Below, in pieces: positions 262-55,805 of a stretch of DNA of 64,000 bases (positions are counted from its first letter, which is position 1; each line of letters starts with the position of its first letter). Under the pieces are notes generated by a model that made no database searches, had not been told where the DNA came from, and saw only the letters and a list, made by a program, of their open reading frames with translations. Source of the stretch: Ranitomeya imitator (taxonomy: Eukaryota). Both the position numbers and the translations under genes were made by a program. The DNA lies in NCBI RefSeq assembly GCF_032444005.1, contig NC_091288.1, positions 40,796,001 through 40,860,000 of the forward strand, in the 5' to 3' direction.

Positions 262-370
262 CTCCGCGCTCCTTCTGGTGACTGACTGCCAAGTTCACTC
301 ATCGTTACTGCATTGTCCGGCTCCTGGTATGGAATTGGCTTTTTATCCTTGTCCAACATGAATTCAAAAT
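262..370 (-). CDS. FASTKD1-like copy B coding exon 12
   Basis: DFEFMLDKDKKPIPY...SPEGAR; AG/GTCAGC. Confidence 0.88.
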
Positions 371-54300: not shown

Positions 54301-55805
54301 GCTTCCAAAGGCAATTTTTGTATATTTAGTTATATGTGCCAACTCTCTGCTGTTAAATAACTTGATATGTTTCATGGTGATGCGTCCACTTTAAGGGGAC
54401 AATGGGGACCACTCGTTAGCTTCTTAAAGGAGACCTGTCAGGTCACTCAGGACTCCCAAACTGCTGACATGATGATTTACTTGCCATAATCCAGCAATAA
54501 AATCATGCCCTTCCTGCAGCATAACGTTACGCATTTATATTGCCCTCATTCACTATCCGGATAGTTCTATGAAAACAACACCTCTGGTCAGAGATAACTC
54601 ATATCCCGATGAGGAGTTGTGCCCTTTGGAGTCGACCCATCACCAAATATTTCAGGTTATACTACAATAGGGGAGTAGTAGATATAAGTAAATACAGAAT
54701 AAATTACCTTTGGAAACATAAGGACTGTGAAGAGAATTATTTCAGCTCTGAGAAAGCCACTGTGACCTGACAGGATCCCTTTAAATCACTTCCAGTAGTC
54801 TTAGATACTGGTGACCGCTTACCTAATATTTTGTATGTTCTCCAGGCCCGTGTTCAGGGCATTGGCTACCCTTCCCATTAACGGACTGCTGCCCAGATCT
54901 AGTTTTTCCAAACAAACTGAGAATTTCGACAACGTCTCCGGTTCAAACCTGAAACAGGTAAAAACATACAATCAATCATATAAATACAAAATAACGAACA
55001 ATGATCCATACAGTTTTATAGGATAAAGTCCAAAAGATTTCTTTATAAAAAGTAATTTATTGATCTAACTTTTTAGGTTTTGTTTTTCCAGTCTGCAATT
55101 GCAAAAGTGCAGGACTCCATTGTCCTGGCTGTGCGTCTTGTCTCATGTATACGATGCTACTATGAAATGCTATGACGTGTATATTAGTGGGAGAAGAGGG
55201 ATACAACGCGGAAAACCTCTGGGCAACACACAGCATGACGAACCTCAACAGCCAAAGAGCTAATGCTGGGCAACTAAATGGCAAAATGGCTACTGGGATT
55301 GGTAATCAAACATTCCACCAGCCTTACTTTTCCAGTCTTCTCCAGCCTTCCATTAGCAGCTGCTGCACCAAAGAGTCGTGCGCTTCCACATTAAACCTTG
55401 AAATACAGAATACAACAATGGTAAACGAGATGTGACATAAGGAGCGAGCAATGGAGCAAGTGGCTCGTACCTTATAACGGCATACAACGTATTCACCAGG
55501 GTGGTGTCGCTCATAAAGTCAATTTTATTTTCTGCCAGGATCCGAAGAGCAATAAATTCTGGGTGATTTCGGAGGGTTTCATGATTTGCGTTTGCGCTCG
55601 TTTTCCCCTTCTGAAGCTCCCATAATGTATTGATGGCGCAGCCCACGTGATGTACTGTAAGCTTAGACTTATGGATGCCAACGAGTTGAAAAATCTGGAA
55701 TTGGTTTGGGCTAGTCATCAACTGATCCAGGAGCGGATCCGAACTGATACTACGCATCTGAAAGAAGCGCAGAGAAAGAGGCAAAGCCCTCCTCCAGCAG
55801 AACAT
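33257..55805 (-). CDS. FASTKD1: FAST kinase domain-containing protein 1 (mitochondrial RNA-processing factor), copy A, complete, 14 coding exons
   Basis: Exons (minus): 55471-55805, 55328-55396, 54823-54948, 52877-53275, 52532-52642, 51175-51306, 43620-44109, 42173-42287, 40717-40845, 39038-39169, 38416-38529, 36200-36341, 35471-35585, 33257-33349. Sum 2502 nt = 833 aa + stop, all GT-AG, phases compatible. FASTK motifs: [57 protein letters not shown]. Arg-rich, acid-free N-terminus. Head-to-head with PPIG as in human. Confidence 0.95.
33424..35036 (-). mobile_element. Tc1/IR-DR DNA transposon with an uninterrupted DD34E transposase frame (33636-34676)
   Basis: ~210-bp TIRs with inner and outer DR (AAAAGTATTG(A/G)CACCC); [23 protein letters not shown] (D-34-E); the right TIR runs into an N gap. 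Confidence 0.93.
35037..35388. other. Assembly gaps or masked bases (35037-35211, 35254-35388) in copy A intron 13
   Basis: Runs of N. Confidence 1.
35471..35585 (-). CDS. FASTKD1: FASTKD1 copy A coding exon 13 (RAP domain)
   Basis: [38 protein letters not shown]; AG/GTTGGT. Confidence 0.92.
36200..36341 (-). CDS. FASTKD1: FASTKD1 copy A coding exon 12
   Basis: [15 protein letters not shown]...LPQGAQ; AG/GTCGGT. Confidence 0.9.
36410..37368. mobile_element. Cluster of tandem Harbinger-type MITEs
   Basis: Repeated CGTGTGCACA(T/C)A(G)CC|TAA and GGTATGTGCACAC termini, same family as 20922-21618. Confidence 0.65.
37380..37882. mobile_element. Near-perfect 503-bp palindromic TTAA-flanked MITE (T2-like)
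   Basis: TTAAAGGGAACCTGT(T/C)ACCTGAATTTGGCGGG arms inverted over ~240 bp. Confidence 0.85.
38416..38529 (-). CDS. FASTKD1: FASTKD1 copy A coding exon 11
   Basis: [28 protein letters not shown]; AG/GTAAGA. Confidence 0.9.
39038..39169 (-). CDS. FASTKD1: FASTKD1 copy A coding exon 10
   Basis: [25 protein letters not shown]; AG/GTGCGG. Confidence 0.92.
40086..40460 (+). mobile_element. Tc/mariner (pogo-like) non-autonomous fragment
   Basis: TA|CCTGTATTTTTCGGACTATAAGACGCAC terminus; the other end was not identified. Confidence 0.4.
40717..40845 (-). CDS. FASTKD1: FASTKD1 copy A coding exon 9
   Basis: [38 protein letters not shown]; AG/GTAAGT. Confidence 0.92.
42173..42287 (-). CDS. FASTKD1: FASTKD1 copy A coding exon 8
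   Basis: [27 protein letters not shown]; AG/GTAAGT. Confidence 0.92.
43620..44109 (-). CDS. FASTKD1: FASTKD1 copy A coding exon 7
   Basis: FMKTSHVPS...[10 protein letters not shown]...[15 protein letters not shown]; AG/GTAGTA. Confidence 0.92.
44374..48181 (+). mobile_element. Non-autonomous piggyBac-like element, copy 2 (3.81 kb)
   Basis: TTAA at 44370-44373 and 48182-48185; collinear and nearly identical by eye to 25070-28793; CCCTAA-like tract 46434-46708. Confidence 0.85.
48187..50468 (-). mobile_element. Internally deleted (non-autonomous) DIRS element of a second family
   Basis: ITRs 48187-48325 / 50360-50468, ICR ~48468-48550; YR C-terminus ([13 protein letters not shown]...TFLKHYRLD, 48574-48891) abutting a gag fragment (48822-49672); RT/RNase H absent. 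Confidence 0.88.
51175..51306 (-). CDS. FASTKD1: FASTKD1 copy A coding exon 6
   Basis: [12 protein letters not shown]...[10 protein letters not shown]; AG/GTAAGT. Confidence 0.9.
52120..52514. mobile_element. Harbinger-type MITE
   Basis: TIR GGTACC(T/G)TCACA(C/T)T with TAA/TTA flanks; 17 bp from the exon 5 donor. Confidence 0.7.
52532..52642 (-). CDS. FASTKD1: FASTKD1 copy A coding exon 5
   Basis: [11 protein letters not shown]...ECKNPILIQ; AG/GTAAGT. Confidence 0.9.
52877..53275 (-). CDS. FASTKD1: FASTKD1 copy A coding exon 4
   Basis: YLSSLMMK...[14 protein letters not shown]...QEIRN; AG/GTGAGT. Confidence 0.92.
54823..54948 (-). CDS. FASTKD1: FASTKD1 copy A coding exon 3
   Basis: [13 protein letters not shown]...[11 protein letters not shown]; AG/GTAAGC. 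Confidence 0.92.
55328..55396 (-). CDS. FASTKD1: FASTKD1 copy A coding exon 2
   Basis: [22 protein letters not shown]; AG/GTAAGG. Confidence 0.92.
55471..55805 (-). CDS. FASTKD1: FASTKD1 copy A coding exon 1
   Basis: [26 protein letters not shown]...TLYAVIR; acceptor at 55833, donor GTACGA. Confidence 0.92.

Follow-up and report, generated by a model that had tools for sequence, protein, structure and literature searches.

Two copies of FASTKD1, here called A and B, lie in tandem on the minus strand of a 64,000-nucleotide (nt) stretch of the Ranitomeya imitator genome (NCBI RefSeq assembly GCF_032444005.1, contig NC_091288.1, positions 40,796,001 to 40,860,000; the whole stretch is hereafter called the window). 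The window is very probably the ancestral FASTKD1 locus, holding two co-orthologues that descend from a single old duplication, that are both functional, and that have diverged from one another. Both genes are intact, and in each encoded protein an N-terminus rich in Arg is followed by an extended helical region and then, at the C-terminus, by a FAST_1-FAST_2-RAP module. Specificity in the handling of individual mitochondrial mRNAs is, as far as is known, mainly the work of FASTK proteins, and vertebrates have so far been credited with a single FASTKD1.

Structure of the two genes

Both gene models were built from a self-comparison of six-frame open reading frame (ORF) fragments, after which splice boundaries were read by hand. 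On the minus strand, the self-comparison revealed two collinear sets of coding pieces that resemble one another, at 55.8-33.3 kb and 30.5-0.26 kb. Copy A consists of 14 coding exons, from an ATG at 55805 to a TGA at 33259-33257 (coding sequence, CDS, of 2502 nt; 833 amino acids, aa; no internal stops), with AATAAA at 33235 after the stop. Copy B lies downstream of A, the A stop and the B ATG being 2768 nt apart, and is present in the window as exons 1-12, which run on the same strand from an ATG at 30488 (with an alternative ATG at 30479) to position 262 and end at a GT donor; this part amounts to 2258 nt, or 752 codons, without a stop or frameshift. An earlier note on this DNA, made from the letters alone, had proposed a second, 12-exon gene of FASTKD1 type directly downstream of a complete copy, and that gene was rebuilt here at 30488-262. 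The exon 12 donor is 261 nt from the window edge and exons 13-14 lie beyond the window start; because the R. imitator assembly's gene table gives copy B a CDS range of 35.4 kb, these two exons must lie within about 5 kb of that edge.

All 24 introns (13 in A and 11 in B) are of the GT..AG type, and the start and end phases of each exon are the same in both copies. Exons 2, 3, 4, 5, 6, 8, 9, and 10 do not differ in length between A and B (69, 126, 399, 111, 132, 115, 129, and 132 nt), and the differences in exons 1, 7, 11, and 12 (9, 3, 9, and 33 nt) are all multiples of three. The open frames, canonical splice sites, shared phases, and pattern of exon lengths described in the earlier note were thus all recovered, and a recount of identical residues in exon 2 (16/23), exon 5 (14/37), and exon 8 (17/38) agreed with its hand counts. 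As proteins, the two copies are 41% identical. The features of the window are as follows.

Copy A exon 1: 55471-55805, minus strand, 335 nt, ATG at 55805; spliced protein 100% identical to XP_069589197.1
Copy A exon 2: 55328-55396, minus strand, 69 nt; AG/GT, phase 2/2
Copy A exon 3: 54823-54948, minus strand, 126 nt
Copy A exon 4: 52877-53275, minus strand, 399 nt
Copy A exon 5: 52532-52642, minus strand, 111 nt
Copy A exon 6: 51175-51306, minus strand, 132 nt
Copy A exon 7: 43620-44109, minus strand, 490 nt
Copy A exon 8: 42173-42287, minus strand, 115 nt
Copy A exon 9: 40717-40845, minus strand, 129 nt; end of FAST_1
Copy A exon 10: 39038-39169, minus strand, 132 nt; FAST_2
Copy A exon 11: 38416-38529, minus strand, 114 nt
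Copy A exon 12: 36200-36341, minus strand, 142 nt
Copy A exon 13: 35471-35585, minus strand, 115 nt; start of RAP
Copy A exon 14: 33257-33349, minus strand, 93 nt including TGA 33259-33257; AATAAA at 33235
Two assembly gaps in A intron 13: 35037-35388 (35037-35211 and 35254-35388), no strand; CDS unaffected
Copy B exon 1: 30145-30488, minus strand, 344 nt; XP_069589194 also starts at 30488; second ATG at 30479
Copy B exon 2: 29984-30052, minus strand, 69 nt
Copy B exon 3: 24482-24607, minus strand, 126 nt
Copy B exon 4: 19205-19603, minus strand, 399 nt
Copy B exon 5: 12554-12664, minus strand, 111 nt
Copy B exon 6: 11983-12114, minus strand, 132 nt; RNA contigs reach its last 30 nt from exon 7
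Copy B exon 7: 5733-6219, minus strand, 487 nt; contig pieces 5733-6221
Copy B exon 8: 5498-5612, minus strand, 115 nt; joints 5612/5733 and 4370/5498
Copy B exon 9: 4242-4370, minus strand, 129 nt; end of FAST_1
Copy B exon 10: 2906-3037, minus strand, 132 nt, FAST_2; joints 3037/4242 and 2286/2906
Copy B exon 11: 2182-2286, minus strand, 105 nt
Copy B exon 12: 262-370, minus strand, 109 nt; joint 370/2182; contigs go on 139 to at least 255 nt past 262
First coding exons of a PPIG-like cyclophilin: 60375-63467 (60375-60434, 61350-61427, 61937-62044, 63351-63467), plus strand; Pro_isomerase; head-to-head with A
Young interspersed repeat in B intron 2: 25066-28797, no strand; 391-bp internal array; 96% identical to 44370-48185
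Second copy of the 3.8-kb repeat, in A intron 6: 44370-48185, no strand; 96% identical to 25066-28797

Over all 833 aa, spliced copy A agreed 100% with both RefSeq XP_069589197.1 and CAJ0923917.1 (Ranitomeya imitator), and the 752 aa of B form the exact start of XP_069589194-196.1, the R. imitator 'FASTKD1, mitochondrial-like' proteins. The RefSeq models are thus the same proteins as those derived from the window; they differ in being named 'FASTKD1(-like)' only, with the two orthology groups, the date of the duplication, and the losses of A absent. Two runs of N (35037-35211 and 35254-35388) both fall within A intron 13 (donor 35471, acceptor 33349), the first to be reached along the gene starting 82 nt beyond the donor of exon 13. 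Splicing across the gapped intron keeps exons 13 and 14 in frame, and the resulting protein equals XP_069589197.1 throughout; the gaps therefore spare the reading frame and bear only on the length of A intron 13.

Protein domains and family identity

Pfam placed FAST_1 and FAST_2, along with RAP, at residues 562-631, 646-730, and 768-827 of copy A and at 563-633, 649-730, and 756-814 of copy B (XP_069589194). Within the window, B encodes FAST_1 and FAST_2 alone, RAP being encoded outside it; when single exon ORFs were submitted to Pfam, FAST_1 alone was recognised, in exon 9 of both copies. The existence of exons 13-14 of copy B, which the earlier note had presumed, is borne out by the 819-aa XP_069589194.1 with its RAP domain and by RNA contigs that extend past exon 12. 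All phmmer matches to A exon 7 were FASTKD1 proteins (1.8 billion representatives searched). Among the matches listed in the A-type and B-type protein searches, every gene-named one was FASTKD1 or FASTKD1-like, the remainder being unnamed, 'hypothetical protein', or 'RAP domain-containing protein'. At the N-terminus both proteins are Arg-rich in composition, with four Arg/Lys and zero or one acidic residue in the first 25 aa.

Both copies resemble the single-copy FASTKD1 of other vertebrates in the order FAST_1-FAST_2-RAP and in a length of about 830 aa, and both fall inside the vertebrate FASTKD1 tree. They differ in being two genes, each 41-45% identical to amniote FASTKD1, and in having replaced 22-34% of the residues that are invariant in single-copy vertebrates. 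The wider vertebrate expansion of FASTK and FASTKD1-5 likewise consists of duplicated mitochondrial RNA-binding proteins with their own RNA targets (PMC5737537, PMC8601606); those paralogues are far older and dispersed, whereas the frog pair is a later tandem duplicate, confined to ranoid, hyloid, and myobatrachid frogs.

Residues 552-802 of B (the C-terminal ~250 aa) matched, by sequence, the FASTKD4 crystal chain 9gek_A (E 2.8e-17), which has a Vsr-like fold, and the Asp of the '(I/V)DFE' strand (D523 of FASTKD4 by our own count) is common to FASTKD4, A, and B. At the level of sequence, the match fits the Vsr-like, or PD-(D/E)XK-like, fold expected of the FAST_2-RAP module. FASTKD4 differs in subfamily, being an ancient paralogue within FASTK, and its N-terminal region is shorter. 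Its 'catalytic' Asp, D531, was considered as a test of the frog copies and rejected: FASTKD1 proteins in general do not conserve the position, and the nuclease activity of FASTKD4 is now in doubt following a 2024 structure paper (PMC11879112).

A separate observation concerns the motif A(V/I/L)(E/D)FLD in the RAP domain (residues ~768-774 of A; the B equivalent is encoded outside the window). Among the non-neobatrachian sequences shown, echidna alone lacked its final Asp (having Gly instead); the neobatrachian copies, in clade A and clade B alike, had all replaced it, with N in hyloid A and with S, G, N, H, and others in B.

Transcription of the two copies

Logan contigs from four runs, belonging to four studies, were aligned to positions 243-6239. 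In each of the four, contigs of 0.5-2.5 kb joined B exons 7-12 at the predicted junctions (5612/5733, 4370/5498, 3037/4242, 2286/2906, and 370/2182), with CT..AC ends, i.e. GT..AG on the minus strand. The contigs extended into the last bases of exon 6 and went beyond exon 12 by 139 to at least 255 nt, where the first 30 letters encode R-FAVELLGLK, the start of RAP in XP_069589194. Because the contigs are spliced, the runs were taken as RNA. Copy B is transcribed and spliced as modelled, and the second gene of the earlier note thereby gains transcripts, from four studies, across exons 7-12. For copy A, transcriptome-like runs contained 0.15-0.28 of the words in the exon 1-5 stretch, of which exons make up 0.32; some of these were the same runs that yielded the B contigs.

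Other signals were observed nearby. In B intron 11, transcriptome-like contigs covered 843-1242 and 1443-1842 at a summed depth of 100-530, compared with 10-40 on B exons, and three runs contained a joint 1039/1156 with 'ATA' between; the pile-up looks like an abundant transcribed repeat family. Two stretches are CpG-rich (observed/expected 0.85-0.98): 30900-31399, which lies 0.4-0.9 kb upstream of the B ATG and is a candidate B promoter, and 57300-58800, which lies between A and PPIG and is a candidate shared bidirectional promoter.

Selection and divergence

Copy B was compared with a full-length hylid B-type transcript (Logan contig L001) by three methods, which gave a dN of 0.12-0.13, a dS of 0.50-0.67, and a dN/dS of 0.19-0.27. 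Copy B is therefore under clear purifying selection across Hyloidea, the ratio is far from 1, and each copy has a full-length ORF in the annotation of more than 15 species; the selective maintenance supposed in the earlier note was correct. Between A and B, dN was ~0.5 and dS ~2 (saturated).

Divergence between the copies was uneven. Identity was 38% in the helical region (residues 41-560), 41% in FAST_1, 54% in FAST_2, and 52% in RAP. At 279 alignment columns conserved to at least 90% in 21 single-copy outgroups, A keeps the conserved residue in 78% and B in 66%; at 38 of these columns a new residue is fixed in hyloid B while A remains ancestral, and at 17 the reverse holds, with hyloid A changed. 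Mean pairwise identity among hyloids was 86% for A and 77% for B. The R. imitator proteins are 98% (A) and 96% (B) identical to those of R. variabilis and 91.5% (A) and 87% (B) identical to those of Phyllobates; among dendrobatids, B diverges 1.5-2 times faster than A.

Age and spread of the duplication

Protein searches were run with a B-type query from Hyla sarda and an A-type query from R. variabilis. Among hyloids, both A and B were annotated in Hyla, Dendropsophus, Bufo, Leptodactylus, Engystomops, Rhinoderma, Anomaloglossus, Phyllobates, Dendrobates, and Ranitomeya. Among ranoids, Hyperolius had both types, Rana temporaria and Aquarana the A type, and Lithobates and Mantella the B type. 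The pair is already present in the public automatic annotation of at least 15 neobatrachian species, where RefSeq calls the B-clade gene 'FASTKD1-like' except in the myobatrachids, Lithobates, and E. coqui, in which it is named plain 'FASTKD1'.

A maximum likelihood (ML) tree of 53 proteins (LG+C20 PMSF; drawn from FASTKD1 alone among the FASTK subfamilies) grouped the neobatrachian genes with support of 100/100 and divided them into a clade A of ranoid and hyloid genes (100/99) and a clade B of ranoid genes with myobatrachid and hyloid genes as sisters (100/100). Hyperolius contributed one gene to each. Outside both clades, as single-copy genes, were those of Ascaphus, Bombina, Discoglossus, Xenopus, Hymenochirus, Spea, Pelodytes, salamanders, and caecilians. 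An approximately unbiased (AU) test rejected a single clade of all hyloid and myobatrachid genes (delta lnL 118.6, p 2e-48). From the tree and the test, the duplication therefore took place before the Ranoidea-Hyloidea split, which published time-trees put at well over 100 million years ago. The earlier note had called the duplication old, and it is older than that note implied. The note had also credited 'this lineage' with an extra factor; the pair itself stands, and the lineage is not the poison frogs but Ranoidea, Hyloidea, and the myobatrachids, i.e. most living frogs.

Two side observations concern single species. The B gene of Eleutherodactylus coqui (L003) has the longest terminal branch among hyloids, 0.39 as compared with 0.13-0.18, after loss of A. 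Many additional A-type models named 'FASTKD1-like' are present in R. variabilis (XP_077128574/576, 128633/634, 131662-131679, and 135254), 94-98% identical to the A of the window, some of them fused to 1069-1093 aa, and nearly all on one 250-Mb chromosome, whereas R. imitator has one A; they represent either recent amplification or assembly duplication.

Locus and losses of copy A

The locus has the conserved FASTKD1 setting, with PPIG on one side and a BTB-Kelch gene on the other. A gene for a BTB-BACK-Kelch protein of 609 aa is located 5.2 kb beyond B, on the opposite strand, in another assembly of R. imitator. The frog locus is alike to that of vertebrate FASTKD1 in having PPIG head-to-head and the BTB-Kelch gene tail-to-tail, the neighbours in human likewise being PPIG and a BTB-Kelch gene. 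In Bufo gargarizans, A is likewise followed by B, 9.6 kb apart. In Mixophyes fleayi and E. coqui, the order is PPIG, one clade-B FASTKD1 gene, and Kelch. Since A is missing from the locus in both, A has been lost at least twice, and B is no mere spare. A and B are co-orthologues of FASTKD1, and neither ranks as 'the original'.

Introns and repeats

The earlier note had found nothing in common between the introns of A and B. This calls for one correction: a 3.8-kb repeat is common to two non-homologous ones, B intron 2 (25066-28797) and A intron 6 (44370-48185), at 96% identity. It was rejected as a relic of the duplication, the introns being non-homologous and the identity far too high for a saturated dS, and is a young repeat-family copy. 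A second candidate, 13374-13883 and 48577-48915 (both minus strand; 45% identity over 89 aa), was rejected as an exon pair because the two are out of order and recombinase-like. These fragments, in B intron 4 and A intron 6, are tyrosine-recombinase-like ORF fragments with a weak Phage_integrase match, and were taken as pieces of transposons, probably of DIRS type. Intronic tandem arrays were seen at 7368-9609, 4497-5268, 21746-24099, 25713-27107, and 44980-46420, with units of 46 bp (x48), 33 bp (x23), and, in three arrays, 391-394 bp.

Proposed history and alternatives

Knockout of FASTKD1 in human cells raises ND3 mRNA, and chimeras made in human cells place the RNA targeting of FASTK proteins in the region upstream of RAP (PMC5449608). 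The order of events that we propose is as follows: originally, a single FASTKD1 would have undergone one tandem duplication, later than the parting of Neobatrachia from pelobatoid and pipoid frogs and earlier than the Ranoidea-Hyloidea split. Both proteins would be imported into mitochondria and would bind mitochondrial mRNAs, as human FASTKD1 does. Divergence after duplication would have been asymmetric, faster in B than in A, and greatest in the helical region, the part that sets RNA targeting in the human proteins. At present, A and B most likely divide their RNA targets or expression, or differ in them. Finally, the overlap retained between them would have been enough to permit the later loss of A in some lineages.

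Several points weigh against this history. Divergence of the RNA targets of A and B is plausible, as judged from sequence only, and mitochondrial import of both proteins is predicted from N-terminal composition only. The runs that gave the spliced contigs were recorded as 'RNA?' guesses. The tree had Heleophryne and the sooglossids, the earliest neobatrachian branches, outside its sample, and the group that the AU test rejected was defined once the tree was known. Of the 10 exonic differences from the reference that the run contigs showed in B exons 7-10 (2953-6152), 9 were nonsynonymous, including R666Q/W, T622A, M611L, A610V, V542I, I492V, H481Y, and F417L; this hints at weak recent constraint, in a small sample of linked differences, and contrasts with the long-term dN/dS of ~0.2. 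Between B and PPIG (7-8.6 kb) in M. fleayi and E. coqui, tblastn did not find an A-type remnant, and the loss of A from the locus argues for substantial redundancy.

The alternative that survives best is full redundancy, in which A and B would share the same RNA targets, both being kept for dosage or through partitioned expression, and in which their divergence would be drift within a fast-evolving family. We consider it possible, if on the unlikely side. The domain architecture and type of N-terminus are the same in A and B, A has gone without trace from the locus in E. coqui and Mixophyes, and FASTKD1 evolves fast in all vertebrates (frog-mammal identity ~42%). Drift of this kind sits poorly with the conservation of each clade around its own sequence (86% for A and 77% for B among hyloids) and with 55 clade-specific fixed replacements at sites invariant in the 21 single-copy outgroups. 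Moreover, every other hyloid that the two protein searches returned has annotations for both copies, and the divergence is sharpest in the part by which RNA targeting is set in the human FASTK proteins (PMC5449608).

The history of old duplication and divergence could also be given a more specific cause. On the stem branch of modern frogs, mitochondrial sequence evolution became faster and gene-order rearrangement began (PMC3551647, PMC4153901). The duplication may have fallen on this branch, with one copy, most likely B, gaining a new RNA target or junction in a case of nuclear-mitochondrial co-evolution, and with the losses of A representing a hand-over to B. We regard this elaboration as doubtful; were it true, the ancestral role would have passed to B where A was later lost, in the myobatrachids and in Eleutherodactylus, a direct developer.

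It is very unlikely that copy B is decaying or silent, a pseudogene in the making, or an artefact of annotation. B does evolve about twice as fast as A in the dendrobatid comparisons, its exonic variants are mostly nonsynonymous (9/10), and its last two exons lie outside the window; against these stand its 752 codons without a stop or frameshift, spliced contigs from four studies, a dN/dS of 0.19-0.27, and full-length RAP-bearing orthologues in more than 15 species, in some of which B is the sole copy. We hold it to be just as improbable that the duplication was recent, or specific to dendrobatids or hyloids, with rapid divergence mimicking age. Long-branch effects are conceivable, as the stem branches to clades A and B are long (0.16-0.34 substitutions per site); yet the ranoid-hyloid species tree was reproduced independently in both clades, Hyperolius has a gene in each, the AU test was decisive (p 2e-48), and dS between A and B is saturated. 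The idea that B is another FASTK subfamily (FASTK, FASTKD2-5) adjoining FASTKD1 by chance can be given almost no weight: it has the low identity to A (41%) in its favour and nothing further, whereas B has the exon count and phases of A with mostly equal lengths, the gene-named matches listed were all FASTKD1 or FASTKD1-like, and B nests inside Anura in FASTKD1, as its original assignment to the FASTKD1 type required.

Significance

The event is of an ordinary kind, an old tandem duplicate; its interest lies mainly in the gene being a mitochondrial RNA specificity factor and in the branch concerned being one of mitochondrial acceleration (PMC3551647). In full-text literature searches, we did not find a paper on FASTKD1 in frogs or other amphibians, on its paralogues, or on a tandem duplication of it, the work that came up being on human and mouse. 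Orthology tables and phylogenomic markers that carry a single frog 'FASTKD1' mix two paralogues. Most living frog species have two deeply diverged co-orthologues, kept since before the split of Ranoidea and Hyloidea. The pair offers a natural experiment in how RNA-target specificity evolves in the helical region, in whether factors of this kind follow changes in the mitochondrial genome, and in what makes a FASTKD1 copy dispensable.

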